Shown: piece by piece, positions 32,205 to 64,000 of the stretch
Layout of the letters: every line of letters starts with the position of its first letter
How positions within the stretch are numbered: position 1 is the first letter of the stretch
Assembly: GCA_964199315.1 (NCBI GenBank)
Contig: OZ116706.1
Coordinates: 27,838,001-27,902,000, forward strand
From: Orbicella franksi
Lineage: Eukaryota
Direction of reading: 5' to 3'
Length of the DNA stretch: 64,000 bases
Notes under the pieces: generated by a model
Database searches by the model: none
Told to the model about the DNA's origin: nothing
What the model saw: the letters and a program-made list of their open reading frames with translations, nothing else
Translations under genes and position numbers: made by a program

Positions 32205-32786
32205 CTAAAAATAACCAAAAGATCACTTTAACAACGAAACGTGACTCTGTTAATATAAATTTTTTTGGCATTTCAAGTGGATATTATGGTTTGAAAAGTC
32301 AACCGGAAATTGACCCTTCGTGTCGAGACTGGTCGGAAATAGCCACGAATGCGTGGGCTTTGAAATTAATCACGTGACTGTAGCCTCGTTTCCATGAGTA
32401 AAAAATTACAAGGGGGTCACCGGTACTACTCCAAAATTCTGTCAAAATAATCGCTATTTGCTACTCCTTGGGTGCGTGTGATGCGGACGTGAAAAGTGGA
32501 ATATTTTTCATATCAAGTCATTTGAATCAATGCTCCTCTATTCAAACTATAACGCACTACTACAAGTGATATTTCAGTGAAACGTTCATAGCAATTTGTA
32601 GTCTATAATTTATAACTAAAACATCGAGTTTGTAAGTCTCTTGGAATCTTCGCTGGGATTTAATGTCATTTAAGAAGACAAACATTGCTGCTATGTAAAA
32701 GCTCGTGACATTGAGTAGATAAAGGTCGAAGTATTTTATATCACGTTGAGGAAAAAACACTTATGTTGATAAACATGTTTAAACTC

Positions 32787-41400: not shown

Positions 41401-44400
41401 AGCCCACGAGTTCTTTCTCGCCGGCTTCCAAGAGAGCGTCTACTCGGCTGGCGCTTTCAAGGTTCACAGCTCGTTTGACGAGTTTCTCGATCACCTCCCA
41501 AACAGAGTCCGACACAGGCGAATCGTCTTCTATAAGAAGCAGGTTTTGCAGGATACTTAACAGGTTTACACCTTGAGGTTTGTTGCTGACCTAGTGCGGA
41601 TGACACACAAATTTAAGTAAAGAGAAAGTCAAGGGTTACATGTTATTGTTGATACATGTTGAATGTTTCTAGTGGTCAGTGCGCTTAGCTACAACTAGCT
41701 AGTTCTCAGGCATGCCACTTAAACTGAAAGAAAGAAACATTTCAAATAAACATAATAGGCTCAAACATTCCAACTGGAGGGAGGCAAACCAGTTGGCTAT
41801 TTACAAGCATGACCGAGGAGTTGAAATAGGGACTACCGGGAAACAATACCAGCTAAGTGGTCAGAGCGGGACTTGAACCCGCGCCCTGCGGATTTCAAGT
41901 CCGGCGCCCGAACCACTTGGCCTCGCTGCCTCTCAAAAGGGTAAGAGAGTTAATCCTTAAATAGGTCTTAATCCCGAGGTCATTCCACTAGAGTTTTTTT
42001 AGATCACCACAAAAATGCAGACGACAAAAGTGCAAAACATACCTTTCTAAAAAGGGCATGAAACACATCTAAATGAGAGGTAAGGTTAACCCCCTCCGGG
42101 GAACTCAGATCATCTTCATCTTCCAGTCTTTGTTCTTCAAACACATCAAGTTGAACCAACAACTCTTCATCGTCGTTATGCCTGTAAAGAGTCAATAAGA
42201 TGAATAAAGTTTCTTCACTGCACAGCAGTGCTGAACCGATTTCGCAATAGTAAGCGTGCGGTACGAAATTATTCGTAGGGTAAGGATTTTCATTGCTTAG
42301 GGAACGTGTGCCTAATTAAGTTTTCAAAGAGCTCTGTTTTCAAAATGGTTTTTTTCCATCCACACGAAAACGAAAAGCTGGTGTTTTCAAAAAAGCTTAG
42401 TGTAAACGGTAGGCCTAATCGTAGAGAGAAAGCTCCGTTTTCAAATTTATCCGGCTGAGGGTGGACTGGGCTAGTGCTGTAGTATTTGAAAAACATTCGA
42501 AACTGGGCGCAGGGTACGGCAAAGTGCTATTAAACCAAGTCAACCAACCACGTTAAAGATCGGAAGAACATTGTGCCAGATGTTCTCTCTCAAGGAATGT
42601 GAAGTCTGGGTTGCGAGTTAAATTACCCCACACAGAATATTTCAGCAACTTCAATCTGCATCACCCCCGACAGTCACGAAATAAATTACTTATCTTTGTT
42701 ATCTTGCGACCGACGCAGTTGGATTCTGAGTAGAACACAAATACTTCGTTGACAGCCAACATTTCACGCCGCAGAAAAAAATCAGTGTTTTAAAACTCAA
42801 ACTGTAAAATTAAACTGATCACTTCTTTAATTCATTAAACTTCGCTAGTTATTCCAGAGGTCCCATCTCATAATTCGAATTCTCATTACTTGTTCACATA
42901 CATTGTTTTTATGCTAGAATTGAGGATTTGGAGGCACATAAAGACAATATCCGCCAATTGATCATTTTCTGTATTCTCCTCATCTTTTAGTTTGAAAATG
43001 AACTGATATTGTAATGAGACTGAAGATGTTTATCAGTCATTGGTTAACCGAACTTGTGTACGTGGTCTTGTGGTTTTTATGCTTAATTTAAAACACAACA
43101 AGCGTGCCAAAAAATGTGTCAACGAATTCACTTCCTCATTGATACGCCTAAGAGTACTGCAAGTAAAACCTGAAACTAGTAGAACAGATGAATAAGATTG
43201 TCTGCCGGTTCGTCAGTAAAAGATTCGCAATTTTTACCGTTGGAAACAAGCAAGTGCAAGCTACATAAATCATCTGTCACTCAAAAAAGAAATATGGGAA
43301 CCGTTGTTAGCATTAATATTTTCCAACTCTAAACATTTTTAACCTGTTATCTAATTTCTTACCTTAGATTACTCAGAATGTCCAATAGTCCCAGCCCTGT
43401 AGACGAATAAATCGGGGCCATTAAATTTCAACGAAACAGGACTCCATGCTGGTCTGCTTTCCACCCACAAAATAACCTAAAAAATGCTCTTCTCTCTCGG
43501 CATTCGGTGAGCAAACTCTATCCAAACAATTTGGCGATATCACGAACGTCCGTGGAAATAAAATACTCGCTCGTTTTCGAAAAATATGCGGTAACACCGC
43601 AAAAACGTTTTGTTGTGAAAAAACGTCCGTGTTAACAGCTCAATCTCACTTGCTAGTTCGCCAGGAATTGGATTCGTTGAGTCGAGCTTTGAATGTAAAC
43701 GTTCTGTTTTTGTCCAATTGCGATAAATATTTAAACCACAAACATTTTATCCCTCAATTTTTTCTCTGCTGGAAACGTGACAGAGCCGAACAGTAGGAAG
43801 AGAGCTCGAACCAATTATTTTGGCAACATGCGAGCCGCGATAAGCGACAAGTGTTTAGAAAACAAAATACCGGGAGAATTGAAATGACAATTATATCTAT
43901 TCAAATTCTGCGACGATCCCCTCATTTTCCAGTCGTTAAGACTTTTAAAAATAAAATTAAAGCTTGAAGGCTTCTTAAAATCTTCACAAGAAACTGATGT
44001 GTTTCTTGATACTGTCGGGCGACTGAGAAAATTCTTCGCTCTTCAAATGGTTTCTGTTTCCTTTCTCATTCTTGCCTATTCTAGTCATTCACGGGGCATA
44101 AATGTTTTGTACAGGCTGCATTCTCACAATAGGGCAAGTCTTTGTTAAGTAATATTTTCCTAATTAGCATGAGCGATTCAATTTCTGATCAAGCTACAAA
44201 AATATCAGTTCTAAATATTGAAAGGGCATGACACGATTAGCTGTCCCAAGAAATTTGAGCCCAATGCACTGAATACTTTTTGTGCTACGCGGGTTAAACA
44301 CAACTCAACCCTGATTTCACAAAGAATGTACGCATTCACTAGCGCTTTTGCCACCAAGAAATTTTTGCAGTTTTTTAAAGCTAATTTCTCCTTAAATATC

Positions 44401-46028
44401 ATACCCAAAGAGCCAAAAATTTCGCCAATTACTATGTTTCACAAGCTCTTTAAATTTTTGAGTCAATTCGAACCTAACATGATGCTTTCTCCACGTAAAG
44501 TCATATGTTAATATAAACAATAACGTCAGCAACGACTGCTCTATGGAGCAGATTTCACTTGAGTGTCGAAAGTAATTCGCATTTCCGCTAGTTTTGGTTT
44601 ATCACGTTGGTGATTTGTTTAAAAATTGCGTCACGTTCTCAACCAATCAGAAGTAAAACCAGAACGAATCGTTACTCACTCCCACACGTTTTCCCGCGCT
44701 TTGCGTCCGCTACATGTAATTCCTTTGAATTTTGATTGGTTCCCTGGATTGCCTGTATCCTTTGTGATTGGCTAGAGTGATAACTTTGATTTTGGTTTTA
44801 CCACACGCAGTTGAAAACTCTTCTGATGCTACTAGTTACAAATCTGAAAATTAAATGGAATCTTGTTGATTTTTGTTTGCTATTCTAAACGGTCTTCAGG
44901 TTTTTCACTCCAATATTGTGACAATTGTTCAAAATCAACACTATCTAATTTTGCATGAATTGTTCATGGCAGCGCATTATTTTACCGTCTTGCTTTTTGT
45001 TAGGTTGCAAGGGACGTCAATAATTTCATGATTTGGAAGTTAGCTATTCCAGCAAAGAAAAAATACGTAGCACAAAAACAGTGAATCAAATCCTGCTTTT
45101 TTTCTTAGGGATTTTCCCTCTCACCTGCAAACTCGTTCCGTAGTCTCACGCGCTCTTCAAAGTCTTCCGTAGCTATTAGTATGGTGTTAATGAAGGCCAG
45201 GCATGTGGTCATGTACGGCACAACTTCGGCATTTTTTAATTCGTTGATGATTAAGCTAAATCTGTATCTTTGTCCTTTGGTGAGCTGCGTTTTAAAGAGT
45301 GATAAAAACTGTGACGTTAGCACTAATGTACATTTCAGGTCCAATTAAAGCTATATTTAGCAAATAAAAATACTTACCAAAGACGAAGGATATTTTAAAA
45401 AATTCGAGCCTTACGCGAGGTTTCATCTACATTTCTTTTTTATATTTCTTTCTTTCTTAAAACGAATTGAAAGATTTCTCGCCGAACTAGAACCTAGCAA
45501 TGAATTTCAGGGTCACTTTAGCGGGGTAATAACTACTTCGTCTACTTGTGGTTTTCCGGAGGAATTAATGAGGTTTTCTGGCCTCTGTTTGCAACATCTA
45601 GGAGTTAAAAGCGGCTAGGACTTACGATTTAACCCGGCAAAATCCCGTTTTGCTAGAGTTCTTCCCTGTAACTGACCAGTCCTTGGCTTTCTCAATTTCT
45701 AAGGATTCCATACAAGTGTTAATTACGAGTATAAACCTTATAAAATAATTGATGGGTTTCCTCATTCTCATTACCTGCCTACTTCACAGCCAGCGATACT
45801 GTAAGAGAAATTAGTTGATAATCCTTAAGCTAACACCTGTGGAGATCCAATCCGTCTTATTTCATAATTTTCCATTCTATGCCTTAAGCTCAGATATTTT
45901 GCGTCAAATTACCTTGTAATTCTCGAGAGCATCGATCGCCAGCTGATGTCCTTGGTTGGAATAAAGACACAGCGCTGAAAGGAGCTCGAAGACCTGTTTT
46001 TTAATCATAGTGTTGTTTGTGTCGAGCG
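35457..46028 (-). CDS. INF2: Inverted formin (INF2/FHDC1 family) constant region: rest of DID, FH1, FH2, WH2/DAD. Exons 46028-45913, 45284-45125, 43396-43363, 42181-42043, 41590-40088, 39719-39658, 39383-39281, 38896-38811, 38403-38303, 37753-37683, 37570-37463, 37039-36969, 36663-36543, 36402-36238, 35858-35457
   Basis: All 15 exons have GT-AG ends and consecutive phases agree (3242 nt; with a 397-nt first exon, 3639 nt = 1212 aa plus stop). Motifs: [24 protein letters not shown] (INF2 DID), poly-Pro FH1, [68 protein letters not shown] (FH2), [19 protein letters not shown] (INF2-type WH2/DAD, 35717-35661). Confidence 0.95.
40350..40750 (-). repeat. Coding 36-bp tandem repeat of the FH1 domain ([12 protein letters not shown] x9 plus 2 degenerate units)
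   Basis: Read directly from ORF 40055-41515. Confidence 0.95.
41645..41932 (-). mobile_element. tRNA-derived SINE in a formin intron
   Basis: Minus-strand head GAGGCAGCGAGGCCAAGTGG (A box)...GGACTTGAAATCC (tRNA-Ser(TGA)-like anticodon arm)...GGGTTCAAGTCCC (B box), no acceptor-stem pairing, followed by a non-tRNA body. Confidence 0.75.
42295..42480. mobile_element. Partial copy of the GTCCACAC-TIR MITE family also at 46179-46521, opposite orientation
   Basis: Shares TTAGTGTAAACGGTAGGCCTAA (reverse complement of TTAGGCCTACCGTCCACACTAA at 46212) and GCTCCGTTTTCAAA motifs. Confidence 0.65.
44546..44824. mobile_element. MITE-like dispersed repeat with CCAATCA/TGATTGG cores; related fragment at about 37180-37380
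   Basis: Degenerate inverted ends GAGCAGATTTCACTTGAGTGTCGAAAG ... TTTTACCACACGCAGTTGAAAACTCTTCT; internal TTTTCCCGCGCTT motif shared with 37240-37350. Confidence 0.55.
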
Positions 46029-46178
46029 CTGAAATCAAAAGAAGAGAAAAGTGAATAAGCTAGAGAGCCCTGCGTACGTTTTCACATGCTAACCTGGCGA
46101 GAAAAAATAACATAGTCAGTTAAAGAGAAAATAAATTGGGGAACCAATTACCCAACTCATTCCTTTTCTTTTGAATAT

Positions 46179-46521
46179 GGCCTCGTCCACACTATAGCTT
46201 TATTTCTACAGTTAGGCCTACCGTCCACACTAATCCGTCAAGAAAACGGAGCTTTTCGAAAACACTCTTCAAACCGGGGGAACTTGAACACATCGACTTT
46301 GCGTTTTAGTGTGGAGGGAAAACGTTTTGAAAACGGAGCTTTTCACGATAATAATGTAATTTCCCCGACCGAGCTTCCTCAAACACAAATCCAAAATGAC
46401 CGGTGATTGTTGCGTTTTCAAATTCCTCAGGCATAGTGCGGACGGAAAAGATTTGATCCGTTTTCAGAGTGAAACCTGAAAACGAAGAGTGAAATTCCTC
46501 CGGCATTGTGTGGACAGGGCC
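46179..46521. mobile_element. Non-autonomous DNA transposon (MITE), about 340 bp
   Basis: Inverted ends GGCCTCGTCCACAC ... GTGTGGACAGGGCC; repeated GAAAACGGAGCTTTTC motifs; superfamily uncertain (PIF/Harbinger-like is a guess). Confidence 0.75.
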
Positions 46522-47942
46522 TAACACCACATACAAAATTAATAAACAGAGACAAACTGGTGGAAAAACTTATTTTTGGTATCAGTGCCAAGAGTACTCT
46601 CGCAAAAATACGTATTTTGTGTATTTTTAGCGCAAACAATAGCAATTTTTTATTCGTAAGTAAAACACTTATTACTCGGCACGCGAACTGCGAAAGTAAC
46701 TTGTCAGCCAGCTAGAGTATTACTGAAAACTTTCTTTAAATCGGGTTTAATTAAAAACAGAGCGAAAACCACTGAGTCCTTCGTAGGCATTCAGAAGTTT
46801 TAATGAGACAAAGCACAATCTTGAAAAAGATTTTATCACTTACGTAAAATAATTGCTACAAAGAGCTCAGTAATTATCACTAAAATGATTCTCTCGTAAA
46901 TTGAATTTTCCAGCTTATAAAAATGTCATTCAATACCCCTTAAAAATTTCCAGTGATGTATAGTTCTCTTTAAAAAAAATTCCACAATAAGACGTTCTTT
47001 TTAATTAACTTTTTTGGGGAAAATGGCACGGAATATAGTATTTTGATATTAAATTTCAAAGAGGGCGAGATGACATTTAGCTTGCAAATAAGAAACTTCT
47101 CGTCGACACAATAACTCTTTCAGTCATTAGCTTATTGGTTGCTTGAATGATTAAAACTCCTCTTCAACAGACACGTGTAGGACAACAAAGACCCACAATG
47201 AGACATTTGAAATTAAAGTGTCAAGACACGCGACAAAAAAGTACACACTCCTTCATATATCAACCTCACTTGGCAATGTTCAGAAAAGCAATCATTAAAG
47301 TCACTAAAATGAACACTAATGATAAACAATTTTTGCACGAGCCAAGAACGAGAAAGAATTTTATGATTTTAGTTTCCCAAAAACGAAAAAAAACAGAGCC
47401 ACTTTGTATCCTGCGTTTTCGCCAAGGGTTTCAATTCCTTTTACAAGTTCTCAATGATAAAACACTCGCTGAAACAAAACTCTAATTATGTGCTTCTCAT
47501 TTCTTTCACTGCGTGAGAACAAGTTTGAAATTTATCAAGTGTTTCAACCCAAAGTCAATAAAAACTGGTTAATTACCAAGCGAGGGAAAATTTCTGACAT
47601 GTTTTGGAAAACGGAGACATTTATATCAAGAAAAAAAAAACGTCTTTCTTCCCTCATGTTATGGAAATAATTTACGAGTTTTGTAGACGCAACAATATTA
47701 CTGTAAATGAGAAAAGTTATGATGCTTCGCAGAAAGTCTGTTCTGTAAATTAATCACTCTTTACAAGATGGCCCCTCATCACGTGAGATTCACAAAGTCA
47801 TGTATCCACGACACAAAAGAAACACCCTACCTAACAGAAATCGAAGATCCGCTTGCGAGTAATTTGTTGGCAAAATACCCTTGTGTTTCTTATTAAAAAA
47901 ATATAAATATTCTTCATTGAGGAATATAACATGAAAGCTAAC

Positions 47943-48339
47943 CTTCAACAAGGTTCCTTACTAAAGTGCTGTTTTGTACCATTGAATCGAGCCCTTGTTT
48001 AGAATTCATGACTGCTTTGATGCAATTAACACATTCAAGTTGCAGAAACGCCTCGACAAACGCCATTCTTCCACCTCGACTTAATCTTTCCAAAGCTTGA
48101 AAGAGCACTTCCATACCACCTTCAGAGAGAAATTCCGCGATCCATTCCGGGGAGCTTGTTTGAAGTTTTGTCTTGAGTCCCGAGAAATTTCGTAGACACG
48201 AGGAACTGAGCAGTCGAACGCAAAGCTCGGCCGAGACATCGGTGGAAATGGAAAAGTTCTCGATTTGTTTTCCATCAGTGGTGCAGTTGAACTGCTGGCG
48301 AACTACAGTCCACCTCTTCGCCACTTTAACATTGGCCAT
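47943..48339 (-). CDS. INF2: Formin variable first coding exon A (132 codons + 1 nt): MANVKVAKRWTVVRQQF...LVE
   Basis: ATG 48339; SAELCVRLL...EWIAEFLSEGGMEVLFQAL...LQLECVNCIKAVMNS; donor GAAG|GTTAGC, phase 1, in frame with constant exon 46028 (G|CG = Ala). Confidence 0.92.
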
Positions 48340-51300
48340 CACTGATAACGGAGTTGGAACAGCGAGCAATAAAGTTGCCGCAACCAACCAAAATATATCA
48401 ACAACCCGTTTGCGGTCAGCGAAAAAAACCCTTTCAAAGTCATTAACCACCTCCAAGAATGCTATAGATTTTATAAGACTTACTAGTTCCTCCGTAACAA
48501 TTAACAACGTTAACAAAGTCTCTCGTGTTGATATGACATGTCATCGGCCCTTGTAGCAATAAATATACTCGGAATGATTAAAACTTGCCACGCAACCCTT
48601 GCCTCGAAACGATGTTCGATAATCTTGATGCACGCAAAAAAAAATTCGGTTCGTTGGCGGATGAATGGACTCCGTCCAAGTTATCGAGAGGCGAGACAGA
48701 ATTTTTAAAATAAAGTGCAAACAATCGCTTGCAGACGTCGCAAATTGAATGGTTTGTTAATCATTTAGCCAGTGCTTTTACAGTAAAAGACCCAAATTGT
48801 AATTACAGCAGAATAGTAAATGAGCCACCCCAACTGACTTGAATGTCTCCGTTGACTTAAAGATATGGAGATTATTTAAAAATAAAGGAAGGAATTATTC
48901 TTCACAGGTTTTGATATACAGCGTCTTGTTTTGATGAATTTCAAGTCTTTGAAACTATGAACATTTTAAAAGCGTGCATTCTGTGGGGTTCCAACTTTAG
49001 ACTTCTGAAATGATTTGAATAGGTATGTCACATAATACGTAATTATTTATTTCAAATAGAAAGCATTTATTTCGTGCAGTTGCGAAATAACGACGGTTGT
49101 CTTGTAATTTGTCGCCCTTCGCCCAACTACTGAGATTAATTTGAAGAAAAAAATTTCAATATTTTTGAAATGACATTTCAACAGTACACTATGGATGTCT
49201 TATATAGGAAACACCATTTACTAAATAAATGATTTTTAACTTCCTCCCCCTGGCGTAGACGGTAAATTGAAGTTTTGCAACTGAAGGCAACCGTCAAAAG
49301 ATTCTAAAATTGTGGAAAGTAATGACTGCTTTTGACAGTAGGTTGGTGCCGGAGCGCTGGGAAGAGAGGGCCGCGAAAAAGGTAATGTTGCAATTTGCAT
49401 CAATTAATGCTTTCGTGTTATTTTCGAACCCTCGACCGGCCAACACGGATACATCGTAAATTGCAGTAACATTTCCAACGTATTTTTACCCCCAATGTTC
49501 GTCTTTTGATTAGTTGTTTTGGTACTAGACAACAGAATGTACAAGATATTGCAAGGGAAACTAAGGGATTTTGCCCATTCTGCGAAATTTTATAAAGAAA
49601 GCATACAAATGCCGTACACAATATAATTCACGCAAGAAACGGACAAAGGCGTTTCAAAACCCATTCATCATATTCATTAGAAACGTTTGTTGCACTGATC
49701 ACTTGATTCTAACAGAACTCTTTAAAACAAACAAGTTAATAGTTTGAGCATTACTTTAGAGTGAAACCTTTAAAAAACAAAGGGTATGTTACAAGCCGTA
49801 TGCTAATCTCTTGTTAATGGCTCATTGAAACTCAATCCGAAAATAAGCTCTCATTCTTAAAGCGATTTTTGTAAAATTACTTTAGAAAGATCGGCACAGA
49901 CCGAAAAAGAAAACGGGTTATGTTTTAAATGGAATATAAAAAATACTTTGGCTTTGTTTCTATACATGTAACAGAAACTCAGGCAGTTTCTGAACACATT
50001 GAGAATAACTCTGAACTACTGTGGAAGCAGTTGTCTACGCGAAGCCTATTTTCCACAACACGATCGTTTGGCTTTTATCCTCACGCACTCATTTTCATAT
50101 CTTTCTGATGTCAAAATACAGTGCTGTTTTCTATTCAGCTCAACACACAATAGCTAGGAACAAGTGCTGTGCCTCCATACACAACTAAACTACGATATAA
50201 TTTAAACCATAGCACATCGAAACTTCTCTTTCCTTTTTGACCAGCGCAAATTGTAGCGGTAAGGGCGACCCATTCGTTTCATAAGGATTACATCGTCTAG
50301 TTGAATCAGGAAATGTGTTTTGCTACGAGAATTGACTGTGAACGTCCTTTACAGAAGGTTTTGCTTGCAGGGTGTCTTGGTGGATTTGTTATCACGCAAA
50401 CAAGTCCAGTCAATCTCTTTGCAAATGGCAACACAAAGTTCATTTGTTATCATATCGGCCAGTATTGTTTCAAGCACTCAAATTTTACATTTTTCCTTTT
50501 GCCTTTAATTATTGCATTCCTTGGCCGACGCGAACACGTCAAAATAAACTAAATCGAAAACATAAAATAAGACCGAAACTAGATTCAGGACTTACTTAAA
50601 TGGTTCTTCAACCTTATTTCTTTCTGAACTTGAAGAAAACAAACTGAAACCGCGATAGCGAGAACACATTTTTAGGATATGAGCTGGGAGAGCACCATTA
50701 TCTCGTTTTTAATTAAACTGATGCTGAAACGAATTCTAAAGTTGGTTCGTCGAGGGAGGCGTCAATAAAATGGCTTTAAAAATGTTGTCAATTCTATGAC
50801 AGGTTTTTAGAGTTCTCCCGTGAAGAACAAGCAATTTTTAAATATTTAAAATGGACTTTTCTGTCTGGCTGGGTTATGAAGCTGTCGACAGTACTATTAT
50901 TATGCATGTATGCGGTAATGTGACAAGCATATAGATAGTAATTCAATAGTAACTTAGTAATGGACCCATATTTCATTTCGTTAAAACTAAAACGACTTTT
51001 TTAATCTTTATAGTCAATAGAATATCTGCTTCCAAGGGAACGACTACGAAATAAACAAGCACGCGCGAAATTATATCTCTTTCACACCAATCAGATCGCC
51101 CTTGCTAAAAATTTCAAGAACAAAATTTCCATAAGAAATGTCCACACGAAATGTTTTTTCCTGCAGTAATTGTAAGAAAAGGGCTGATCTTTAACCCTCT
51201 TGATTCCAAACTTGACAGATCTCCTTCTGATTGTCAAATTTTCGTTTTTCTTTCGCGAAGTTCCGGACCAATACCGCGCGAGCGAGGTATTTCATTGAAT

Positions 51301-52029
51301 ATAACGTTACCGGGCGGTACATATATTGATATAAGAGAATTAGGCGCAGGCTCTTTGACGTTGTTTGCGTTTAGAATAAATTTTATACAGAGTAATTTTG
51401 TGACTATTCTACATTTCTCTTTCACTTTCGAAAGAGAGAGAGAGAGAGATAATTATAAAAAGCATTTGTCCAAAACAATATTCACATTTTAACACCTGCC
51501 CCGCCGTAAACAACAAGCAAAGAGGCAGGAAATAAAATAATTAACCAACGTGGAACAATTTTACAACGACCATACTGTTAGCTAAATCTACGAAAATGGT
51601 CAAGATCAACAACGTTACAGTTATACGACTTGGCAAAAGTTTAATTTAATGTGGGTAGAAAACTAAATAAACGATAAGTTGCGTATGCAAATTTGATTCA
51701 TTTTTGCTTAATCCTAGGTCAACAATAGCAGTATTCACTGGATCAGGTGATATTACAAACGGTGTACAAACCACGCGAAATGTGTTATTCAATGGCTGAA
51801 ATCATTATATTTCCAGATATTATTTTACTGTGGAACTTTTCAATAATTAGAAGCCCACTTCATTTTACGGCTAAGACAAGAACTTATTTTAACCAGATTC
51901 AAATTTCGGTGTGCTTCTGATGTCAAACACATTTAACAGCCGCGAACATTGTTTACACAACATGAAGATACTCGACGGAATCTGTAACCCGGGCCCAAGG
52001 ACTATTGCTGTAAGTTTCAAGTCGCTTAC

Positions 52030-52411
52030 CTTTAACCAGTGATCTAGTTAACTCGTTGTTCGCGGTCATAACTTCCAAACCAACCGACGAATTCATAACT
52101 GCTTTTATACATCTCACACACTCGATTTGCTCGAGAGCTTCTGTGAACTTCAGTCCATTTCTAGAAGATAGTGACGTTAGACCATCGAATAAACAGTCGA
52201 ATCCGCCGAGATTAAGAAATTCACTTAGCCATTCCTTGCTTGCCTTTTCGAGTCGCGGACGGATGCCAGAAAAATTCTTCAGCGACGGTGTTTTCAGTAA
52301 CTTAACACACAATTCTGGGTCAGCATCTGCTATGAGGCCGCTTACAACTGAAGAGACGTCGTTTTGATCAGAAATCCTTCGCCATTTTGATCTCGACGCG
52401 TTCAGAGCCAT
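52030..52411 (-). CDS. INF2: Formin variable first coding exon B (127 codons + 1 nt): MALNASRSKWRRISDQ...LVK
   Basis: ATG 52411; ADPELCVKLLKTPSLKNFSGIRPRL...WLSEFLNLGG...ECVRCIKAVMNS; donor AAAG|GTAAGC, phase 1. Confidence 0.92.
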
Positions 52412-53574
52412 TTTCGTTCCGCGCAGAAACTGCGACTTGGGACTGCGATGACAAATGAGGCAGGTTGTGTGCGCTTGTATGACGTGCGGGCCAGAGAAAC
52501 TATTATTTAGCCGGCCTTGCACGAAACACAAGTGCTGGGCTCCGAAGTGCGCAGACACTCGAAGATTCTTGACACGATAGAGGGAACAAAGGTTGCCAGC
52601 GACTTTATAACGGACCACTCGAACAAAAGCCGAGATAATTCATGTTTTGAGAATGTTTACAAATTTAAGCCGTGGGAATCGCGCTGAAATCCCTTGAGAA
52701 ATGTTTATTTGCTTTTAATAAGTTGTGAGGATGGTCAATATCCAACGTTAAAATGTGCCTGTCATTCAATGATATTCTAACGGTACCGTTTCCTGACTCT
52801 TTCCTTACAGCGACGGATCTAGGATAAATGGTGACTGATACAAAGAGTGCCTCCTAGAGGGGCCACGCTCCCTTAGGAAACGTTCTGGAATTTTTTTACC
52901 CCTACAGTCCATCTGAGTAATTCTGAAAAATCTGACCGATTTCTGTAAAAACGTTGGAAACCAGTATGGATCCGCGCCTGCCTTGAGTTGTTTTTTCATG
53001 AAATGAGCAGACAAAGAGGTACAAATCTGTTCAAATTCCGATCGATTGAGGTGCAGAGAAAGGGAAGAAATTATCTGGAACTAAACGTCTAGAATTACCT
53101 CTTATCGAGAAACTGTGAAAAATAATACAAAAACTATCAGCAAAATTAGACAACTCATTAACCTCTGCCTCTATGTCGTGCTGTCTTCTATGAATTTACA
53201 GCTTAAAACTATATATTTGTGCTAAGGATATTTGCACAACATAAGAGGGTTCTCTTGTGTGACCCTCTACCGGAAGAAGTCAAGAGCTTATGCCTGGGCA
53301 AAACACCGGAAGTGACGTAGGAAATGCTACATCCTGCTTTGGCCATCGGTGGAAACAATTCGCTGACAAAAGTTTATTTGCTGTGAATACAAACGAAGAA
53401 AATAAAGAAATATTCTACGTTGATAGTTAAGTATTCTCGATGCACAATCAGCCTCATCAACTCTAGCATAAATAAATTTATGTGTGTGTGTCCCTAACAA
53501 CGAGAGACAGACATAAAGACAGACAGAACTTGAGTAACTTGAGTTACCAAGTAACTCGAGCCTCGAAAAACTTG

Positions 53575-53980
53575 TTATTGATTTTCAACACCAGTTTTAC
53601 AAAGAATCAAGAGTTCAGAAATCAAAAGTTCGATTTAGTTCGACTGTCCAATTATTTTTGTGTGAGTCCGATTTGGTTTAGTCTGCTGGCAGCCGGTTTT
53701 TTCTCTTAGGGTCACTTAGACGAATGTTCAGTCGTCGCGAACGCAAAATAAAAGGACAGTATGGCAGTGGCCGAGTGGGGAAGAAGGTGTGCCGCGCTTA
53801 TGTCTCGTCCCATTCCCCTTTACGCTAAAGTGTCACTCCTCATAGCCCCTGCTGAATTTCGAGAGCAAAACAGACTGCCAGTAGTCTAGATTCGGTTCGA
53901 TTGCCGAACTTTAGTTCGATTTAGTTCGATTGAGTTCGATTGAAATACCGTTCGATTGGGTTCGATTGACTATGCCGGGA
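53575..53980. mobile_element. GTTCGATT-rich repeat interrupted by a nested MITE (53679-53888)
   Basis: Inner element has 22-bp degenerate inverted ends TAGTCTGCTGGCAGCCGGTTTT / AAAACAGACTGCCAGTAGTCTA and near-identical 9-bp flanks GATTTGGTT / GATTCGGTT. Confidence 0.6.
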
Positions 53981-55645
53981 AATGCGTTCTTCTCTGTTGC
54001 GTTATGTTTTTGGACGGTGCTGCAAATGTTCGCTCTTCAATGGATTCAGTATAAAATTTACAAGATTCTGTCCGTACAAAAACCAAAACCGTTTCTGTAA
54101 TTTGTTTATTTTGTACCTCTCGTCTGTGTTGTTGATATCGTCAGGTAAACAATTCGTCCACTAAAACGTATTACCGTTTTTGACAAGTCACGCCCGACTT
54201 CGGCACTGCGAAAACTTCGGCCTTAATAATGAGGACTAATATGGCGAAGCGTTCCATTGCAAAAATTTGCAATTGCATGTTTAGATACCTACACTTAAAA
54301 AGCTTTTCTTATCTTTTCGAAATGACAAACAAATGATTAAAGAAAGCAGACTTCTCCTAAAACAAAATTTCTTTGCAAGATCTCTTGTTGATAAGGATGT
54401 TGACCGTTCAGTATAGAAACTCTTTACTCTAAGTAGAATATCTTATTATCCCTTCATTTTATTTCACTAGCTGTCACAATCATGTTATGAATTCGTTTGC
54501 GCAGGAGATGTTTAAAAATAAATAAAATTCTCACGAATTCTACCCTCTGCATTCCAAAACGAGATCTTTTACAATTGGCTTTCGTAGTATGATTTTCTGT
54601 TGTTTTTTTTTAGATAAGAACTTAATTTAAACACCCACTCTGAAACCACATTTTGTCCATACAATAAATTTTTCATGCATTCTGCCTCAGTGCAATATCA
54701 CTTTTGGAAAGCAGGTTTTTCAAAGACAGGTGATTTAAAAATAATAGTCCTATTCGTCAGGTGTTATTGCTAGAAAAGCTGAAATTATTTTGTTACTGCA
54801 AAATAATTTGAATTCAACATCAAAGAAAGTCATATTATTTTAGTGAAACCGGGCTTAAGACCAGAAGAAACAACCATCAATTCACCCGTTAATATTAAAA
54901 TAATCTGTCAGTGTGATAACGAGATCTTCTTGTTTGTTTAATTAAGCCAAACACCTTTATAACGTTACTATTGCACTCGTCCATTCCCTTGCTCGAAGTT
55001 TAGATTCCCCTTACTGCTTTCAGTACATTTGTTATTACTCCAGTTGGAAGAATTTAGCGTCAGATCAGGATAATATTTCTTTATCGATGACTGTCTCTAA
55101 TCCTGTTACCTGTCTGCTTGGTTTTGTACTAATATTGTATGGAGAAATTGAATTTTGATCAATACTAAGATTTAAGTTAATTAACTTTTTTTGGAAGGAA
55201 TAAATAAATACACAGAAGCCTTAGTTTGTTCAGAAATTCAAAATATCATTGCGTGCACAAAATTGAAGCGGCCTATGGCCTGGGTTTTATTTCGTATTAA
55301 ACGTATGTTTGCAGTTTGCAACAAAGAGGGGTGCTTGTTCTCGAAACTGTGGGAAGTTGCAGAAAACCTGTGACAATACGGTATGAACTGTGAAAACTTT
55401 TGTCTAATATATGAAAATAAAATTTATAGGTGATATACACTGCTCGCAAACTTTCTCGTACCCGGCTTTGGAATTAACTAAAAAATATCATCAATTGTTT
55501 CCTCTCTCTACGTATCACAGAACTGAAGCACTACCAGCAAAAATAAAATCTCCTCTCGATTCGTATACAATTTTTAATTCAAGGTTGACTCCACTACAGT
55601 CATAACGACACTAGGTAAATTAAATTTTCAAGAAATTGACGTTAC

Positions 55646-56024
55646 CTCTGCCAAGTCTTCGTGTAAAGTCGCGATTTCCCACCATGAAATCAAGACCAGT
55701 TTTCGAGTTCATGACCGTCTTGATGCAAGACGCACATTCCAAAAGCATAACCGCCGCATCGAAGAACAACTTCAACGAGCCTAATTTTTCCAAAGCGTCA
55801 AGCAAAACCTCCATTCCGTTGTTCTCAAGAAATTGAAGCATCCAATCCCTCGAAGAGTTCTTCAACTTGCTATGGATCCCACAGTAGGTTTGAACAGACG
55901 GAAATCGCAACAAACGAACACAAAATTCCGGGGAGACTTCGCTCGAGAGCAAAAACCCTTGGTCTCCATCGGATAGTCGCCTCTTTAAAGACGACCATTT
56001 GTTTTTAACGGTAAATCTCGACAT
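55646..56024 (-). CDS. INF2: Formin variable first coding exon C (126 codons + 1 nt): MSRFTVKNKWSSLKRRL...LGR
   Basis: ATG 56024; SPEFCVRLLRFPSVQTYCGI...WMLQFLENNGMEVLLDALEKL...ECASCIKTVMNS; donor AGAG|GTAACG, phase 1. Confidence 0.92.
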
Positions 56025-57836
56025 TTTCGACGAATTTTAAACGGAATACATTTCACAGGTAGTTTTGGTGCCCCCTGGGGCACAGAACATTAAAATGCCA
56101 ATCATTACATTGTCCATGGCAACAAAGTAGGCTTACAGCACCTCAGGTCGGCCTGTTTTGACGATAAAAGCCAACAGAAAGTTTCGCATGCGAAAAAATG
56201 AAAGCGGATTTCAGGTGACACCTAGGGGAATTTTTAATAGTTTTTTGTTCCATATTCAAATAAGTCATTAAAATTGCAGCTGGCACATAAAGTGCCTTTT
56301 TAAAAAAAACCAGCTAAAGTTTAGCGAGTGGCATTTTGGGCGGTAGGTCAATAATCCTTCTTTTCTCCAAAACAGTTGGCGTTAAGCGTACAGTTTGGCG
56401 TTCATTCTTTGAGAATTAAATCTAAAAGAAGTTAAAATTCAGTAAAATGCAGTGTTTTAAAGATAACGATTTTGATAAATTCTTGAATCACATTTAGTCT
56501 AACTGCGCGATGAGTTCAGAGCGGTTGGCCGTGCAATGGCCTCATTCTTAGGTACCGGGCTCTAGAACAATTGTTTCACATTGTTGCCTCTCACCACCCG
56601 AGTCTATTAGTGGGTAGCATGCCGAGAAAACGTAATAAAAGTATTGCGGGATTTGGGGAAGATGAGCTTTGTGTTAGACCACAAAGAGATCTTCAGGTAA
56701 TACAACAGCTGAAAAATGAGGGTTCTTCAGCTACGCGCAACACAAGCGTGGAAGTGTCACACACACGCGTGGCGATCGCGATCGCGCGTAACTGACAGGT
56801 CTGACAGATCCAGGTCAGTCCAGTCAGTATAAGGGCTGTCGTCATTACCAAGCCGCCCGTGCGCAGCTCCCGGCTCGAATTAATTTGATTGCATTTTTGG
56901 CATGTGTGACCAAAAGTATGTATTAGCGTAAAACTAAGGTCATATAATAATGCTTCAGGGTTAGGGTCTTTTGAAAAATATCGCTTTAATTGTGGAATTC
57001 TCCTAAAGCTATGAATATGATGAGCGTGGACCTTTTCATCCGATTTTCCACGTGGTCTACGACTGTTTCTCGCGGTGTCCGCTTTTCTGTCCGCTTTTCA
57101 CCTCAGGAAAGAACGCGGGCTCACTTTCCGGAAGGCTTATAATAGTTTGGTCGGTCACGTAAATCCCTCTTCCGTAAAAAAAATTGATTAACAAAACCTT
57201 GTAAAAGAAAAGAGATTCGTTTTTCTCGGAACTGGCTCAAAATGATAGAATGGAAATTCAAACCTTGCTGCGGTATAACCTGAAATATTACTTGTAATCG
57301 TGATTCCAGTTTCCGGTAAACGTCCCAATTGAAAATCCGGGGACACGAAATACCACACTTATAAAAATAAACAAACGATTTTAACGGTAAACATTTATAT
57401 TATTTCAGCTCCTTTCTGCTTTGAATTCGGCAGATCAGATCGTTCATTTAGGGGTTCAAATGATGATTGCTTTGTTCTGGAGTGTCTCGTGTTTAGTTTT
57501 GACCAAAAGAACATGATCGTAGGAGTCATGATCAATGGAGCATTTTACACGAACCGTGAATTCCCACATGAGCAATGCTATTTATAACACAGCTGAGTAG
57601 AAAACACAATAGAGACACTTTCAAACGATTTCTCACTTAACAGCACACTAGCATCGACAATAATATGAAACGAAAATCTCCTTGTACAAGTGGAAATTAA
57701 AACATGTGCAAACTGAACTCTCTGACATGCAACAAGTTCACTGAGATCACACCCCGAGGCACACATTTCTGGTTTGCTTCTAGCTGCAGTAAAGCTTAAG
57801 CAAGCACAAATAATCTTATAGAAAAGAAATCCTTAC

Positions 57837-58243
57837 CATAAACTAGCTGACAGACGAGATCTGGCGATGACAGGAAGTAAAACACGCCAGCTTGAGAGTT
57901 CAGTACTGCTTTAATGCACTGAACGCACTCGAGCGCCACAAAAGCATCCATGAAGGCGATGTGGTAATTTTGAGCTGACAAACGAACCGAGAGAATCTCT
58001 AACGCGTTCATTAACACATCTAACCCTCCAAGGTCGAGGAACTCTGTCATCCACTGGCTGGAACATTTCGAGAGTTTGGGATGAAGCGCGGAAAAGTTCT
58101 TCAACGACGGTATACGAAGAAGACTGACGCAGTTCTGGCTCGATGCTGCTGAACTGTCCTTTAGCTTGTTCGTGTGAATCAACAAAGACATTTTGCTGGA
58201 AAATAGGCGACTTTCGAATTCTTTGCCAGCCTGAATTTTCCAT
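57837..58243 (-). pseudogene. INF2: Formin variable first coding exon D, frameshifted near 58131 (apparent 2-nt deletion); a second ATG at 58191 is in frame with the constant region
   Basis: The frame from ATG 58243 gives MENSGWQRIRK...SSIEPEL; the homology continues as CVSLLRIPSLKNF...ECVQCIKAVLNS...LVY in another frame. Donor TATG|GTAAGG. Length 407 nt; adding 2 nt gives 136 codons + 1 nt, phase 1. Confidence 0.8.
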
Positions 58244-58705
58244 GTCTTAGCAGAGAACGGTAAAGTTTGCTATTTCCGTACTGTGGTTCTAATCTCCCCA
58301 CTAACAGATGTCAGTCTTTTATACTTAATATGCAACCCTCGCTATTCGATCACGTTCAAACCTATTGAAGACGTGACCAATCAGAATTTCGTTACATTTA
58401 TGGGTGCAATTCCGGTGCAATTTTAAAATTATAAAACTGTCCGGGTTTTTTAGGACGCCTAAAAGCTTTCTTTCGCCTACTTAGTAAATCTAAATAAAAA
58501 CTTCTTTAAAAGTTTCAAGGCCTTTTGCATTGAAGGTTTCTTTCACAGTAACGTATCAATCGTGACTGAGATTTCAGGAAGTCTCTCGAATAAATCGAAT
58601 GACTGTAGAAACATGGCGGCCTTGGGTTAACAGGGGTAGTCGATAACCTCTGAAGATGCCAGACAAAAAAAGATCACCTACGGTGCTTTGAAGGGGGCGA
58701 AGTGG

Positions 58706-58834
58706 CGAAATGACGAAATGGCGCTGAGGTTAGCTGCAAATATCACTGACCGGCTCAATAATTGTGAGGATTAACCCTCACAGACACCCGTATCCCACAT
58801 TGACTTTTACCCGTAGTGCCATTTCGTCATTTCG
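58706..58834. repeat. Perfect 17-bp inverted repeat (CGAAATGACGAAATGGC) flanking a 95-bp spacer; probable MITE remnant
   Basis: 58706-58722 is the exact reverse complement of 58818-58834. Confidence 0.7.
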
Positions 58835-60386
58835 AAATTCGTGTTTTAAACACGACCCTCTGAAGAGTGAGATTTAAATTTCTAAGGGGAGCTGACCGTC
58901 ACACGAAAGTCGAATTCAAACCTCAACTGCTTGACTTCTACTTAGTTCAAGATGATGCACACGTTGTGAAATATGAAGCAGAGATTCAAGTACATGCGAT
59001 TGGTTCTGAAGACCTGTCAACCTTTACAAAGAACGTTGTATGACATTTTACCCTTCATTGTAAGTTATAACTAGCGCTTCAGAAAACAATTCTAGGACCT
59101 TCTGTGATTGTTGGGCCCGATCTGTGGAGGCTACTCAGGCATCTACAAATGAACCATTTCCAATGGATCGCGTGACCTGATGAAAGCGATGACCGCATGC
59201 AAATGTTGATGGCGAGGGCACGCTAAAAGTTACATATTCATTTCCTAATAATTATGATTCTCTAAGGTTCAGTAAACAAAAGAGAAAAGCTGCTTCGAGC
59301 CATATAATTAAAGAGAATGTGTCTTTCTGTCACCTCTTTGAGAAACGAGCACGTTGTTTTCTTTCAATCATCGACTTAAACAAACAACACGAATTAACGT
59401 AATTAATTCTATGCACATGGCAGCATGTGCGAGGTTGAGGCGAATCCATTGTTTGTCAATTTGTAAATTACTGAAGCGTTAGTCCGTCTTAATAGACTCA
59501 ACGGGCAGCGCCTTTTGTACAAAACAGTCAGATCGCTTAAGTTCGAGTGTGCACATCGACAAAACCTTCGAATAGATGTTATCTTAGTCTATCTTTCCCT
59601 CAGGCCAAAATTTTTATAGTTTTAGATCTATCGACGGAAAGTCCTGGATTGCAACGATACTGTACCGGGAAAACTAAAATTATTTTTCATCAATCATCGC
59701 TAATTATCTTGAACTGATAATATGTACAATAGATTTCACATCGCCTCGTTCATAAGGTTCTCATCCAATCACATGTCAGGCACGATGCTCTTACGCATGG
59801 GGAAAATAAGTAAAACAAAAAAACAGAAACAGTTCAAGAAAATGTCACTTTCATAGCCATAAATAGACTTTCTAGAGAATATGTTTTTCATAGCCGAAGT
59901 CGTTATATTCAGCCGTAGATCAGTCAGAAATTTGCATGTTGAGAAGGGTCCACTTCATTTGGCTTTCAGCTGCATGAAATTATCTTAACATCACGCAAAC
60001 ATCTCAAGCTATTTACCAAATTCATTGAAACTGGCAAACACTCATTGTCTTGATTTTTCTTTGACATCGAAGTTTAACTTTTAATGATACTTTGCCATAG
60101 AAAACACTTCACAAAATCTGTGAAAGTCGTTCAGTTATGTAAATCGATTGCAAATGAGGAGTTCGGAATTTTCAGATGATAAAAAAAAACATTGAAAACA
60201 TTAGGGATCTGTTAAGACTGTTAATAACTAAAGGAAAATTATTAAAAGCGCAAAAAATTACACCAGATAAACCTATCATTAAATTTTACGTAGGTTATCT
60301 TCGTTATTTGTCGACATCAAATACTCTACTCTTCAAGCACAACATCATTAAGCGAGATAACGATAGCAATGTTAAACTTTACGTAC

Positions 60387-60783
60387 CAGTAACTAGTTGA
60401 TTTGCTAGCGAAGAATGGTTGCTCATGAATTCCAATCCGGTCACATTATTCAAGACAGCTTTAATGCATCGTACACATTCAAGTTGTAGAAATGCATCGG
60501 AAAACTTCGCCAGGCCGCGCTCGCTCAGTTTTTCGAGAACTTCAAACAGCGAAGTTAACCCTCCAAGTTCCAAGAACTCGGTCAGCCATTTCTTCGAACA
60601 ACCTTCGAGTTTCCTAATCAAACTTGCGTATGTTTTAAGCGAGGGAATTCGCACAAACTTGATGAATAACTCCGGCTCTACTTCTTTCAAATCGGTGAGC
60701 AGTTCAAGAGTTTCTTGGCCATCCGTTTGCTCGCTGATATCGAACCCTCCGGCTTTGCACAGCTTCTTCCAGTTCACCGACAT
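60387..60783 (-). CDS. INF2: Formin variable first coding exon E (132 codons + 1 nt): MSVNWKKLCKAGG...LVT
   Basis: ATG 60783; VEPELFIKFVRIPSLKTY...WLTEFLELGGL...LQLECVRCIKAVLNN; donor ACTG|GTACGT, phase 1. Confidence 0.92.
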
Positions 60784-63700
60784 CGCTGTAATTTCAGTTT
60801 TGGGGAGTTTACCGTAGGCTTCAGATCAGTTCATGACAATCGACCGGCAGGGCTTAAGTCATGCAAATCTCAACGTTTTTTTTTTTTTTCTTTTTCCGCC
60901 CACGATTCGAGAGGAGGTTTATGACTTATTCTATAACTGTTGATGGATACGTCTATTCACGTAATCGCTGTCATTTCCCTTTCCCATAGGAGAACAGTAC
61001 AAAGCTCACTATTAAAGGTTACGACCCTTTTCTTGCACGTAAGCGCACAGCAGACGTCAATAATAACAACGAGGAAGTCTGCAACGAAGCGTATCTCCCT
61101 GGTCCTAGCCTATTGATACCTCATTTTCTCTTTCAATCGAAGACAAACACACATGCTGGGCCAAATTATTTATTCAGTGGAAAGTTGTATTCCGATAATA
61201 ATACTAGGTGAATATAGCTATTTTTTTTTATGAGTCAATCTTCATGCCCCTAACCCCCAGGTTAGTTGAAACAGCAGGCCCATATATCCACCAACAACAA
61301 TACAAAATATTCCGGATATGGATAAACGATTTCCCCCAGTGCCCAGCTCTCCCCTTCCCTTCACCTCTTTCCCTTCACTTTTAGGACCTTTATCAGCTAC
61401 AGAACATTGTACAACTTCAAATAGAAAATTTTTCAAATTCTGCCAGTAGATCGCGTGCAGAAAAGAAACTTTCAATCTTCATCAGACGATGGACCATGCA
61501 GAAATGCTAGTATGTACCGACGTCCCGAAGTTCAAGTGCCGAACAATTGCTAGAGGAGAAGCGGAAGTCAAATCGATGTGTAGCATTTAAGTTCTCTTCA
61601 ACTTCACCTACCAACTTGAAAACTGTTTTTTATCTCAATATTAATATTGACTAATGTTATTTATGTCCGAAGAGACTGTTTTAAAGTCTAATGAACGTAA
61701 GCCAAACGGAGGAAAAAAAAGCTATTTTTAAACAGTTCGTCGATCGTTTTACCGTAATGTTGTTCCATATACGTTTAGAAACGATCACCGGTGTAGCTTA
61801 TGTCTGTGGAACATAATCGAAGGGAAAACTTAAAATCACTTTTCTGGGGAAGAGAATTTTTGAGAGCAATGTTGAAATTCTGTTTAGAACTTTCGAAAAA
61901 GGAAGGGATTAGCCATAGAGTCTAAAGGTCATTAATGTTTCATCAACAATTAAAATGTAATTTTGTTTTAAACCCAACAAGCAGAAGTTACTTTCGGACC
62001 GGTTAAAAATAGAAATGTCCCTAAATAATCTCACCAGGTGCAAAACTTGAACATTGAACATTACAATCTGAAAGTTAAGTTTCATCCTACTGACGGTATT
62101 ATAGATTATGATTTCTGAATATATTTTTCTAGAAGTTTTTGAAGAATGTATTATTGAGAGCAGCGCGCGCTATATCATTTGCCTAAATAGGAAGTGGTTG
62201 GCGACAGAATGTAAGGTCATTGACGTTTCACGGTACAGGATTATGGGCTCCACCCCAGATTTTCCGATAACATGATAAGTCAAAGATAAGAAGTATAAAA
62301 AATATGTATTAAACGAACCCGGCTGAGCAGAACTTTCCTTCGGCTATTGAGGGCGCGGGGCCAGATGGGGTTAAATGAGAACTGGCATTTACCATTTTTT
62401 CACTGGGAAAAGGAGATTTGATTCACTGGAGCTGGGGATCATAAACAAAAGAAACTGGAAATGGTATTGGGATTTGCACAAAAAATAGTCTGGAAAAAAA
62501 TGAGATTTGATTTGATTTGTGCTGAGAAATGGACGCCTCTTCAGGACCCTAGATATTAAATGTAAAAATGTTCGTTATTACTCCCCGAGCTTATCGTTTG
62601 GTTATTTCATATTTAATGCCGAAATAAATATTTGTCCTTGGAATCATAAGCGACAAAAATAACACATAAGCGAAAACGGACTAAACGTTTTATTACGGTT
62701 ACGCCAGAAACGTGTGGATCCGCGTGGGAAACCTACATTACGATGTTGAACACAACAAACCCGTTTTCCTTATCAAAGTTAATTCTTTGGTCAAGAATAA
62801 CTTTCAAGAGAGATTCATTGAAACCACAACTTCTCTAAAGTCAAAAATATGTTTTAGCATGATAATCTTGTCACAGGTTACAGCTGAGCAGTTCGAGTGG
62901 ATCGTATTGGAGAGGTAAATTTCTAAAGAAAAAAAAATTGTGAGCTACAAAGGTCACTGGTCGCATCATTGAGGTGGTCGGATTAACGTACTGGGTAAAG
63001 TTAGAAAGAAAACAAAAGTTGGGAACTCCAAAAGGAGGTCGTTATTCCAAAGGCTGTGTGATCAGTCTCAAGTGTACGGCATATCTCCCTCTGCAAGACT
63101 GCTTTTAAATGCCTTTTCTTGGATAACATCTTATCATATGGTTTTGAAGGACATCTAACTCCGGACTGGATGCAAAACAAGGAACCCAAAACGTACAGTT
63201 ATGCGTATTTAGCAAGTTGAAATGTGCAGACGAAACCAGTATTGCCGGCAAAACCTTCGTTCTGTGGTCAGAACCATATTGTCCATCCTTTTGTAGTCTC
63301 CTAGCCGAAGACTTTTTTTACGGTTCGCAGGTCCTCAAGTACTCAAAAACGAATTGCAAGTTACATTTTTCAGGACGAATACCTGTCTACCTGTCAGACA
63401 AGGGTGCCAAATCCCACTGCTTAATACTGATTAACCTCCCTAGTGTCATTTATAATATATAACCCCTTGATCAAGAATAATGGAAGTTGACTATCATGCA
63501 GATTTCTAAAAAAGCCACTGTTGATATTGGTGAACATAAACACGATTCCTTTTTGGCACATTTCTACTTATTCTTTGTCTCAGTCGATTTTTTTTCTTAG
63601 TGATGAAAAACAATTCGCTCATTAAATTTGGATGCATTTATGTTTGGCGCACCTTGTGGCATAAAAACTATTACCAGAGATGCCGAATTGTTTTTAAAAC

Positions 63701-63797
63701 TTTCATTAATTAAAACTGAAATATATATTTCGCTCCTCTCTCTCCTCAAGTGCAACCAGGTATCAATGACATAACAGGCAAACAACGATTTACCTAC

Positions 63798-64000
63798 CAA
63801 TTACTAGTTGATTCGTCAGCGAGGGGTTGTTGGTGACAAACTCTAAGCCCGTCTCATTATTCAAGACAGCTTTAATGCACCGCACACATTCAAGTTGTAG
63901 AAATGCATCGGAAAACCTCGCCACGCTTCGCTCGCTCAGCTTTTGGAGAACTTCAAACAACGTTGAAAGTCCCCCAAGCTCCAAGAACTCCGCCAGCCAT
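63798..64000 (-). CDS. INF2: Formin variable first coding exon F (5' part beyond the window end): ...WLAEFLELGGLSTLFEVL...LVI
   Basis: Stop-free to the window edge; 53/67 aa identical to exon E; donor ATTG|GTAGGT, phase 1. Confidence 0.9.

Follow-up and report, generated by a model that had tools for sequence, protein, structure and literature searches.

A probable array of alternative first coding exons at the INF2 formin locus of the coral Orbicella franksi

We analysed a stretch of 64,000 nucleotides (nt) of the Orbicella franksi genome (GenBank assembly GCA_964199315.1, contig OZ116706.1, positions 27,838,001 to 27,902,000 of the forward strand), hereafter called the window, whose minus strand carries one formin gene of the INF2 (inverted) type. 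An earlier note on this DNA had drawn attention to paralogous exons lying in tandem in front of what seemed to be one constant region, as in the protocadherin and UGT1A clusters; we call these exons heads (A to G, belonging to types A to E) and the shared exons downstream of them constant exons. Positions follow the numbering of the window, which ends at 64000, so that higher numbers are coordinates of the extended window. A slash in a splice site marks the exon border. In the direction of transcription, the exons are the following:

66058-66451 (G000:C9:27904058-27904451), minus strand: head G, a type E copy, outside the window, 2 kb past its edge
63798-64185, minus strand: head F, a type E copy, with its 3' part (63798-64000) inside the window
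60387-60783, minus strand: head E, type E, one of three copies, 397 nt, donor G/GTACG
57837-58243, minus strand: head D, type D, 407 nt, with a 2-bp deletion near 58131/58132
55646-56024, minus strand: head C, type C, 379 nt, donor G/GTAAC
52030-52411, minus strand: head B, type B, 382 nt, donor G/GTAAG
47943-48339, minus strand: head A, type A, 397 nt, an ATG-bearing first coding exon, donor G/GTTAG
45913-46028, minus strand: constant exon 2, phase-1 acceptor ttcag/CG, contains the equivalent of human INF2 A149, single copy in the genome
45124-45284, minus strand: constant exon 3, start of Drf_FH3, edges from an RNA joint and a loose end at 45124
40058-42207, minus strand: constant exons 4-5, end of the DID/FH3 region and a G+C-rich, proline-rich FH1 exon, edges approximate
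35586-39722, minus strand: about ten small FH2-domain exons, edges approximate
30406-32205, minus strand: large C-terminal constant exon, approximate, from the match to Oculina INF2

The assignment to INF2 comes from both ends of the gene. Pfam Drf_GBD scored above its cut-off in every head tested (A-E); on the downstream exons, Drf_FH3 was found in exon 3 and Drf_FH1 (57 bits) in the exon at 40058-41590, and FH2 was matched piecewise by the small exons that follow, one of them above the Pfam cut-off. The nearest relatives of these exons are stony-coral sequences, the source names of the full-length relatives read “inverted formin-2”, and full-length INF2 of both Oculina and Montipora is collinear with the locus from the head down to about 30406.

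The earlier note had placed six heads (A-F) on the minus strand at these coordinates, and translation, tblastn and the Drf_GBD matches of A-E confirm them as paralogues; their pairwise protein identity is 40-80%, and tblastn of each head peptide against the window recovers all the other heads (E 1e-12 to 1e-33) and nothing else. Its count of “six or more” rose to seven when the window was extended, which added head G, and a six-frame search of the whole genome finds exactly seven heads, every one at this locus, with a spacing of 2-4 kb. Head F, whose start it had put outside the window, is complete at 63798-64185. The phase-1 GT donor at one homologous codon that it had described is likewise there: G/GT stands at the 3' end of all seven heads, the exon length is 1 mod 3 in six of them (D excepted), and the last G of the head together with the opening CG of exon 46028-45913 makes an Ala codon, followed by LDTNN. 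As for this next exon, said to be single-copy, its peptide matches itself only in a tblastn against the window, constant exons 2-4 are found once in all 497 Mb of the genome, and no second copy of it was found between the heads or elsewhere (window, extended locus and whole genome). An artefact of assembly was considered as the source of the array and rejected, the copies being 20-60% diverged in protein and having orthologues in other genomes.

One claim of the note stands in part. Heads A to E had each been credited with an ATG of their own, which holds for A, B, C and E but needs correcting for D, whose ATG at 58243 does not share the frame of the DID part. When the D exon is compared with that of a related coral (Logan contig L011), the difference is GAACTTTGCGTC to GAACTGCGTC, i.e., two bases short near 58131/58132 (CTTTGC to CTGC); the exon is thus 407 nt long, or 2 mod 3, and an in-frame ATG is found at 58191. 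The D orthologues in Oculina, in Montipora and in several Logan and ENA contigs are intact, and the deletion may be either a real lesion of this species or individual or an error in the assembly.

The content of the heads is best read against human INF2. Among solved structures, the N-terminus of the orthologous Montipora protein finds human INF2 as its best match (E 8e-83, with the matches to the human INF2 DID ranging from 8e-83 to 4e-80), and in the Montipora-human alignment the head ends near human residue 130, the A149 equivalent lying in the constant exon. An AlphaFold model of the Montipora E-type N-terminus, which is only moderately confident (mean predicted local distance difference test score of 60, with 72-91 in the head) and was used solely for secondary structure and fold class, begins with a helix, continues with a disordered linker and has seven helices after it inside the head; with Foldseek, it matches the DID or regulatory-domain structures of mDia1, FMNL and FHOD. 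Based on the structure alignment and on the AlphaFold and Foldseek results, a head corresponds to the N-terminal extension of INF2 and about two armadillo repeats at the start of its DID; the earlier note had likewise read these exons as an N-terminal extension with the first part of the DID.

All head peptides start with a basic stretch that contains a Trp, and they share a PEL(C/F) motif and a core, ECxxCIKxVxN, that does not vary. About 30-38 residues precede PEL(C/F), and in every head the Trp stands at position 5-10 in the basic stretch. The Trp in its basic helix is kept in all coral and anemone heads, while the length and net charge of the linker vary, as do the positions +3 and +7 from the Trp: type A has W(V/I)F, type B W(I/F)N, type C the WLL of mammals, type D WIP or WAA, and type E WLG, WLS or WAA. 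Residues common to every head sit in the armadillo core.

Comparison with other cnidarians gives the array its depth. The 90% cluster of Nematostella INF2 holds five RefSeq isoforms, X1-X5, with five different paralogous heads (the first 124-131 residues), each of which precedes an identical ALDTDNTMIKK... body. In Montipora, isoforms X1-X6 of M. foliosa and X1-X3 of M. capricornis show three heads, of types A, D and E, and a D-type head is also present in an Oculina RefSeq isoform. At the Nematostella locus (DS469701.1), one meets in turn TMEM185A, a divergent gene for a CSL zinc-finger protein (DPH3), heads X3, X4, X1, X2 and X5, and the constant exon; the heads are again 2-4 kb apart, and their types run E, D, C, B, A, which is the coral order. 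In the coral, the upstream limit of the array is a DPH3-like gene (CSL zinc finger) in divergent orientation at about 68.6-69.0 kb, some 2.4 kb from head G. TMEM185A and DPH3 thus adjoin INF2 in both animals with like orientations, a conserved micro-synteny. The coral neighbours are:

68573-68959 (L008:4573-4959), plus strand: DPH3-like CSL zinc-finger gene, divergent to head G
about 75100-78530 (L009:1141-4528), minus strand: TMEM185A gene, beyond the DPH3-like gene

A maximum-likelihood tree groups coral E, F and G with Nematostella X3 (support 99/93), coral D with X4 (96/86), coral C with X1 (96/83) and coral A with X5 (99/95), the head of Montipora X1 being orthologous to this last pair as well. 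Head B corresponds to X2 by position and not by the tree, where the branch of X2 is very long. Given the shared head order, the shared neighbours and the tree groups, the array of five heads, A-E in this order, appears to be older than the split between stony corals and sea anemones, and type E was triplicated later, in the coral lineage. That split is several hundred million years old.

Outside these animals, a single head is what we found. In the bilaterian RefSeq sets (amphioxus, starfish, crinoid, acorn worm and catfish), full-length isoforms share one head, and two shorter INF2 models are N-terminally truncated or have a different start; octocoral INF2 has one head in the one model examined. 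The exon boundary of the head lies at the same codon and in the same phase as in INF2 of the other animals compared.

The acorn worm Ptychodera flava has several distinct INF2-like proteins (P0130, P0290, P0293, P0294 and P0321) with the same longest listed contig size, 50.6 Mb; INF2 may have diversified there by duplication of the whole gene rather than of the head exon.

As to how the heads have evolved, the pairs among E, F and G have a ratio of nonsynonymous to synonymous substitution rates (dN/dS) of 0.12-0.21 with dS of 0.85-1.2, and these three heads are thus under purifying selection; in comparisons across types, synonymous sites are saturated. The repeat units resemble one another in DNA up to the exon borders and no further, the flanks of E, F and G being without homology. 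Intact open reading frames (ORFs) for each head type exist in many coral assemblies (identity 55-100%), where several head types lie on contigs of equal listed size. These data bear on the idea that one or two heads are functional and that the others are decaying relics of a partial duplication with no role in the protein. The frameshift of head D and the silence of head A in one informative RNA run would fit such decay; the other heads, however, keep open frames, start codons and consensus phase-1 donors, the low dN/dS of E, F and G persists although homology of their flanks is gone, types A, C, D and E have Nematostella orthologues in the same order, and heads of types A and D occur in Montipora RefSeq isoforms, as does type D in Oculina. 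We regard the relic explanation as highly improbable.

RNA of Orbicella franksi was examined in three polyA raw-read runs (X22, X23 and X24) and one run of Logan contigs (X21), all aligned to 45050-51049. In X24, exons 3 and 2 are covered at about 70 and 60 per 200-nt bin, or roughly 100x on exons, and the joint between them (45284 to 45913) is crossed by 86 reads. The sole listed joint leaving the acceptor of exon 2 goes from 46029 to a 27-nt piece at 48029-48055, within head A, with 14 reads and 8 start positions. This piece lies 86 nt from the donor of A and always has T, not C, at 48043; E, F and G carry exactly the T version at the same 86-nt offset, and B, C and D differ from it at 9-10 of the 27 positions. 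The 14 reads, which wholly explain the apparent depth of head A in X24, are best taken as coming from an E/F/G-type head spliced to the constant exon and as cross-mapped on the most conserved segment of A. X21 has the same joint at 46029 in a contig of depth 32, next to a depth of 34 for the constant-region contig; the latter, 2,701 nt long, stops exactly at the acceptor, as expected at a branch of the assembly graph. Four further polyA runs (X25-X28) contain 0.17-0.19 of the sequence words of 52030-56024, where the share of exons B and C together is 0.19; X21 contains none of them. This suggests sample-specific use of heads B and C. Among proteins, a collection of 5.8 billion entries gave no spliced ORF of head plus constant region: of 120 head ORFs, none includes the constant exon, the heads reading into the intron; a 300-aa profile search returned no coral fragments of 165-525 amino acids, and a search of representative proteins returned full-length INF2 from bilaterians only.

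A repeat some 280 bp long (46196-46477), in the intron that separates head A from the constant exon, reaches a summed contig depth of more than 5,000 in X21 and hundreds of reads in X24. Most of its RNA matches are 90-95% identical, with joints labelled “opposite strands” or “goes back” and loose ends of many kinds; the repeat seems to belong to a widespread, transcribed family of interspersed elements with inverted-repeat structure, and its own loose ends hide any at 46029. X22 and X23, which bear the same species label as X24, have coverage on this intronic repeat only, with no reads on the constant exons and no read at least 99% identical; either INF2 is not expressed in these samples or they come from a different species. 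In constant exon 3, about half of the X24 reads show C>T at 45132, 45168 and 45216, which look like heterozygous or strain single-nucleotide polymorphisms of the RNA donor relative to the assembly.

One could also take the heads for independent mini-genes, each encoding a protein of about 130-150 amino acids (aa), made up of the N-terminal helix and half a DID, whose frame reads into the intron and stops there. Older annotations point that way, with separate Nematostella genes of 127-147 aa and short or chimeric models in Oculina and Pocillopora, and the unspliced frames do stop 1-25 codons past the donor. Yet the head ends at the INF2 exon boundary of the other animals compared, codon and phase alike, in the middle of an armadillo-repeat domain; donors are kept in seven of seven coral heads, with GT at the donor position in three of the five Nematostella heads checked; RNA reads connect the constant exon with a head of type E; and no short spliced-out form came to light. 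The mini-gene explanation is, in our view, even less credible than that of relics.

We put at roughly 0.8 the probability that the locus is one INF2 gene of about 36 kb on the minus strand, with seven alternative first coding exons that are each spliced to a single constant region. This joining of variable first coding exons to one INF2 body was the central proposal of the earlier note, and it is upheld by the RefSeq heads of Nematostella and Montipora, by the collinearity of the Nematostella locus and by the RNA joint of E/F/G. Two of the checks suggested for it gave support: RNA junctions, where an E/F/G-type head is connected with the constant exon in 14 reads and in one contig, and a comparison with another anthozoan, where Nematostella has five tandem heads before one constant exon, with the same order of types.

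Several observations weigh against this proposal, and one has to keep them in mind. The RefSeq isoform models are computed predictions. The E/F/G joint is read from a cross-mapped segment of 27 nt, the letters between its aligned parts are “not known”, and the 86-nt spacing is deduced from read length. In X24, head A has a depth of about 1 and no 47943-46028 joint is among the joints listed; more generally, the RNA joints listed here do not include a direct joint of A, B, C or D to the constant exon, and the word share in X25-X28 could stem from sequence other than exons B and C. Head D is frameshifted in the present assembly. Lastly, no shared motif was found upstream of the heads, for each of which we infer a promoter of its own, and an AG that could be the acceptor of a leader exon stands two bases before the ATG in A and E, and one base before it in F.

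If the locus works as we propose, its 5' part would be an 18.5-kb array of heads in the order G, F, E, D, C, B, A, with no coding exon upstream of any head and, presumably, a transcription start in front of each. Each transcript would carry one head joined to the constant exon at 46028, and after that exon the remaining DID/FH3 sequence, FH1, FH2 and a long tail. A transcript begun at an upstream head would run on through the heads downstream of it, and these, having no acceptor in use, would be spliced out with the intron, in the manner of the protocadherin and UGT1A clusters. All products would share the actin-polymerising engine and the DAD-contacting equivalent of Ala149, and would differ in the part equivalent to human INF2 residues 1-130, i.e., the Trp-anchored helix, the linker and the first two armadillo repeats of the DID; the choice of head may then set how, and how easily, autoinhibition is released.

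The last of the points listed against this proposal bear mostly on the way a head would be selected. The heads might be mutually exclusive internal cassette exons, as in Dscam or myosin, with one promoter and a non-coding leader upstream of G, and with splicing making the choice. The AGs beside the ATG of A, E and F would then be acceptors, the want of a promoter motif common to the heads would be natural, and the 2.4 kb or so between G and the divergent DPH3 gene would offer space for a leader exon. B, C, D and G, on the other hand, are without any acceptor-like sequence beside the ATG, an AG at the exact position in two of seven heads is within chance (about 0.07 by a binomial estimate), and an acceptor two bases before the ATG, as in A and E, would permit in-frame products with two heads. 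Moreover, every head begins at the protein N-terminus with its own ATG and with no upstream coding exon, and the spacing of 2-4 kb without conserved intronic elements fits separate transcription units better. We consider internal cassettes unlikely.

Upstream of the seven heads, regions of 400 bp contain no 7- or 8-mer enriched beyond shuffled controls, and no candidate k-mer recurs in all five Nematostella upstream regions. A shared promoter element and an extended duplication unit were both rejected, there being no enriched k-mer and no DNA homology outside the exons.

Alternative first coding exons of this kind have well-known counterparts. The protocadherin (Pcdh alpha and gamma) and UGT1A clusters likewise have tandem paralogous first coding exons, each with its own ATG and donor, in front of one constant set, and they join different heads to one functional body, as is proposed here. 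INF2 differs from them in being a cytoskeletal regulator, not a cell-surface receptor or an enzyme, in its cnidarian host, in having 5-7 heads instead of about 10-60, and in that the variable part is half a domain instead of a whole ectodomain or substrate-binding domain; the conserved promoter element of Pcdh also has no counterpart found upstream of the INF2 heads, whose separate promoters are putative. Plectin is a cytoskeletal protein too, with many alternative first exons that give isoforms different N-termini and targeting; these exons are short and mostly unrelated, and are not known to be a family of paralogues that encode a portion of a folded domain. Among invertebrates, chelicerate sDscam genes have tandem 5' cassettes picked by alternative promoters and joined to constant exons (PMC4835542); both systems thus have tandem 5' variable cassettes, those of sDscam belonging to an adhesion molecule of the immunoglobulin (Ig) superfamily in another phylum and encoding whole Ig domains. 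INF2 of human and mouse, for its part, belongs to the same family and has the same order (N-terminal extension with the anchoring Trp, DID, FH1, FH2) and the same exon boundary, before ALDT(S/N)N; it differs in having one head, its known isoform diversity being C-terminal (CAAX versus non-CAAX).

In animal cells, INF2 drives the rapid actin burst that calcium sets off, and mutations of its DID are a cause of human kidney and nerve disease. The first 30 or so residues of human INF2 bind Ca2+/calmodulin and centrins via W11, L14 and L18; deletion of the N-terminus or replacement of residues 20-24 makes the protein constitutively active, and mutation of the calmodulin site locks it off (PMC11589041, PMC12632326). 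How the N-terminus and the DID keep INF2 off, and how calmodulin activates it, is still debated (PMC12632326). In the coral heads, a putative calmodulin/centrin site, recognised by its likeness to the human sequence, takes the place of a Rho-binding G region. Since the +3/+7 positions, the linker and the charge vary while the invariant residues lie in the armadillo core, the heads probably differ in activation threshold or partners, not in the capacity for autoinhibition. That every head is used in this species, and that heads differ in function, is what we infer. A broader and more tentative proposal, to which we give somewhat less than even odds, is that INF2 of hexacorallians is an ancient locus in the style of Pcdh and UGT1A, older than the coral-anemone split, whose five head types would have their own promoters and serve different cell types or conditions, with differing Ca2+/calmodulin (or centrin) thresholds, autoinhibition strengths or partners.

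Were this broader proposal true, a variable-first-exon cluster would be described here for the first time in a cytoskeletal regulator and in a cnidarian, and its heads would be a natural series of domain swaps for that step of INF2 regulation which is understood least. Five to seven modules, each made of an N-terminus and half a DID, on one body and preserved in this lineage by purifying selection, would in any case form a ready-made comparative series for that regulation, in which the Trp and ECxxCIKxVxN are kept while the other calmodulin-contact positions and the linker vary. The variable-first-exon design would also not be confined to vertebrate receptors, detoxifying enzymes or arthropod Dscams, which is relevant both to formin biology and to the evolution of gene architecture. 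The earlier note knew of no description in formins, and we found none, either of variable first exons in a formin or of the present cnidarian locus, in the full-text literature (subscription-only papers lie outside this coverage); formin phylogeny papers that include Nematostella do not mention the arrangement. The isoforms themselves are already in the RefSeq sets of other species, so what is new is the description and not the underlying data.

The array also has a practical side, as its heads are annotated as separate or chimeric genes in several cnidarian sets (Nematostella v1, Pocillopora and Oculina). Gene predictors mishandle it in more than one way: heads become separate genes of 127-147 aa in the Nematostella v1 models P0095 and P0383, Pocillopora meandrina P0001 is a chimera of several heads, and Oculina patagonica P0348 is a fusion with a frameshifted second head.

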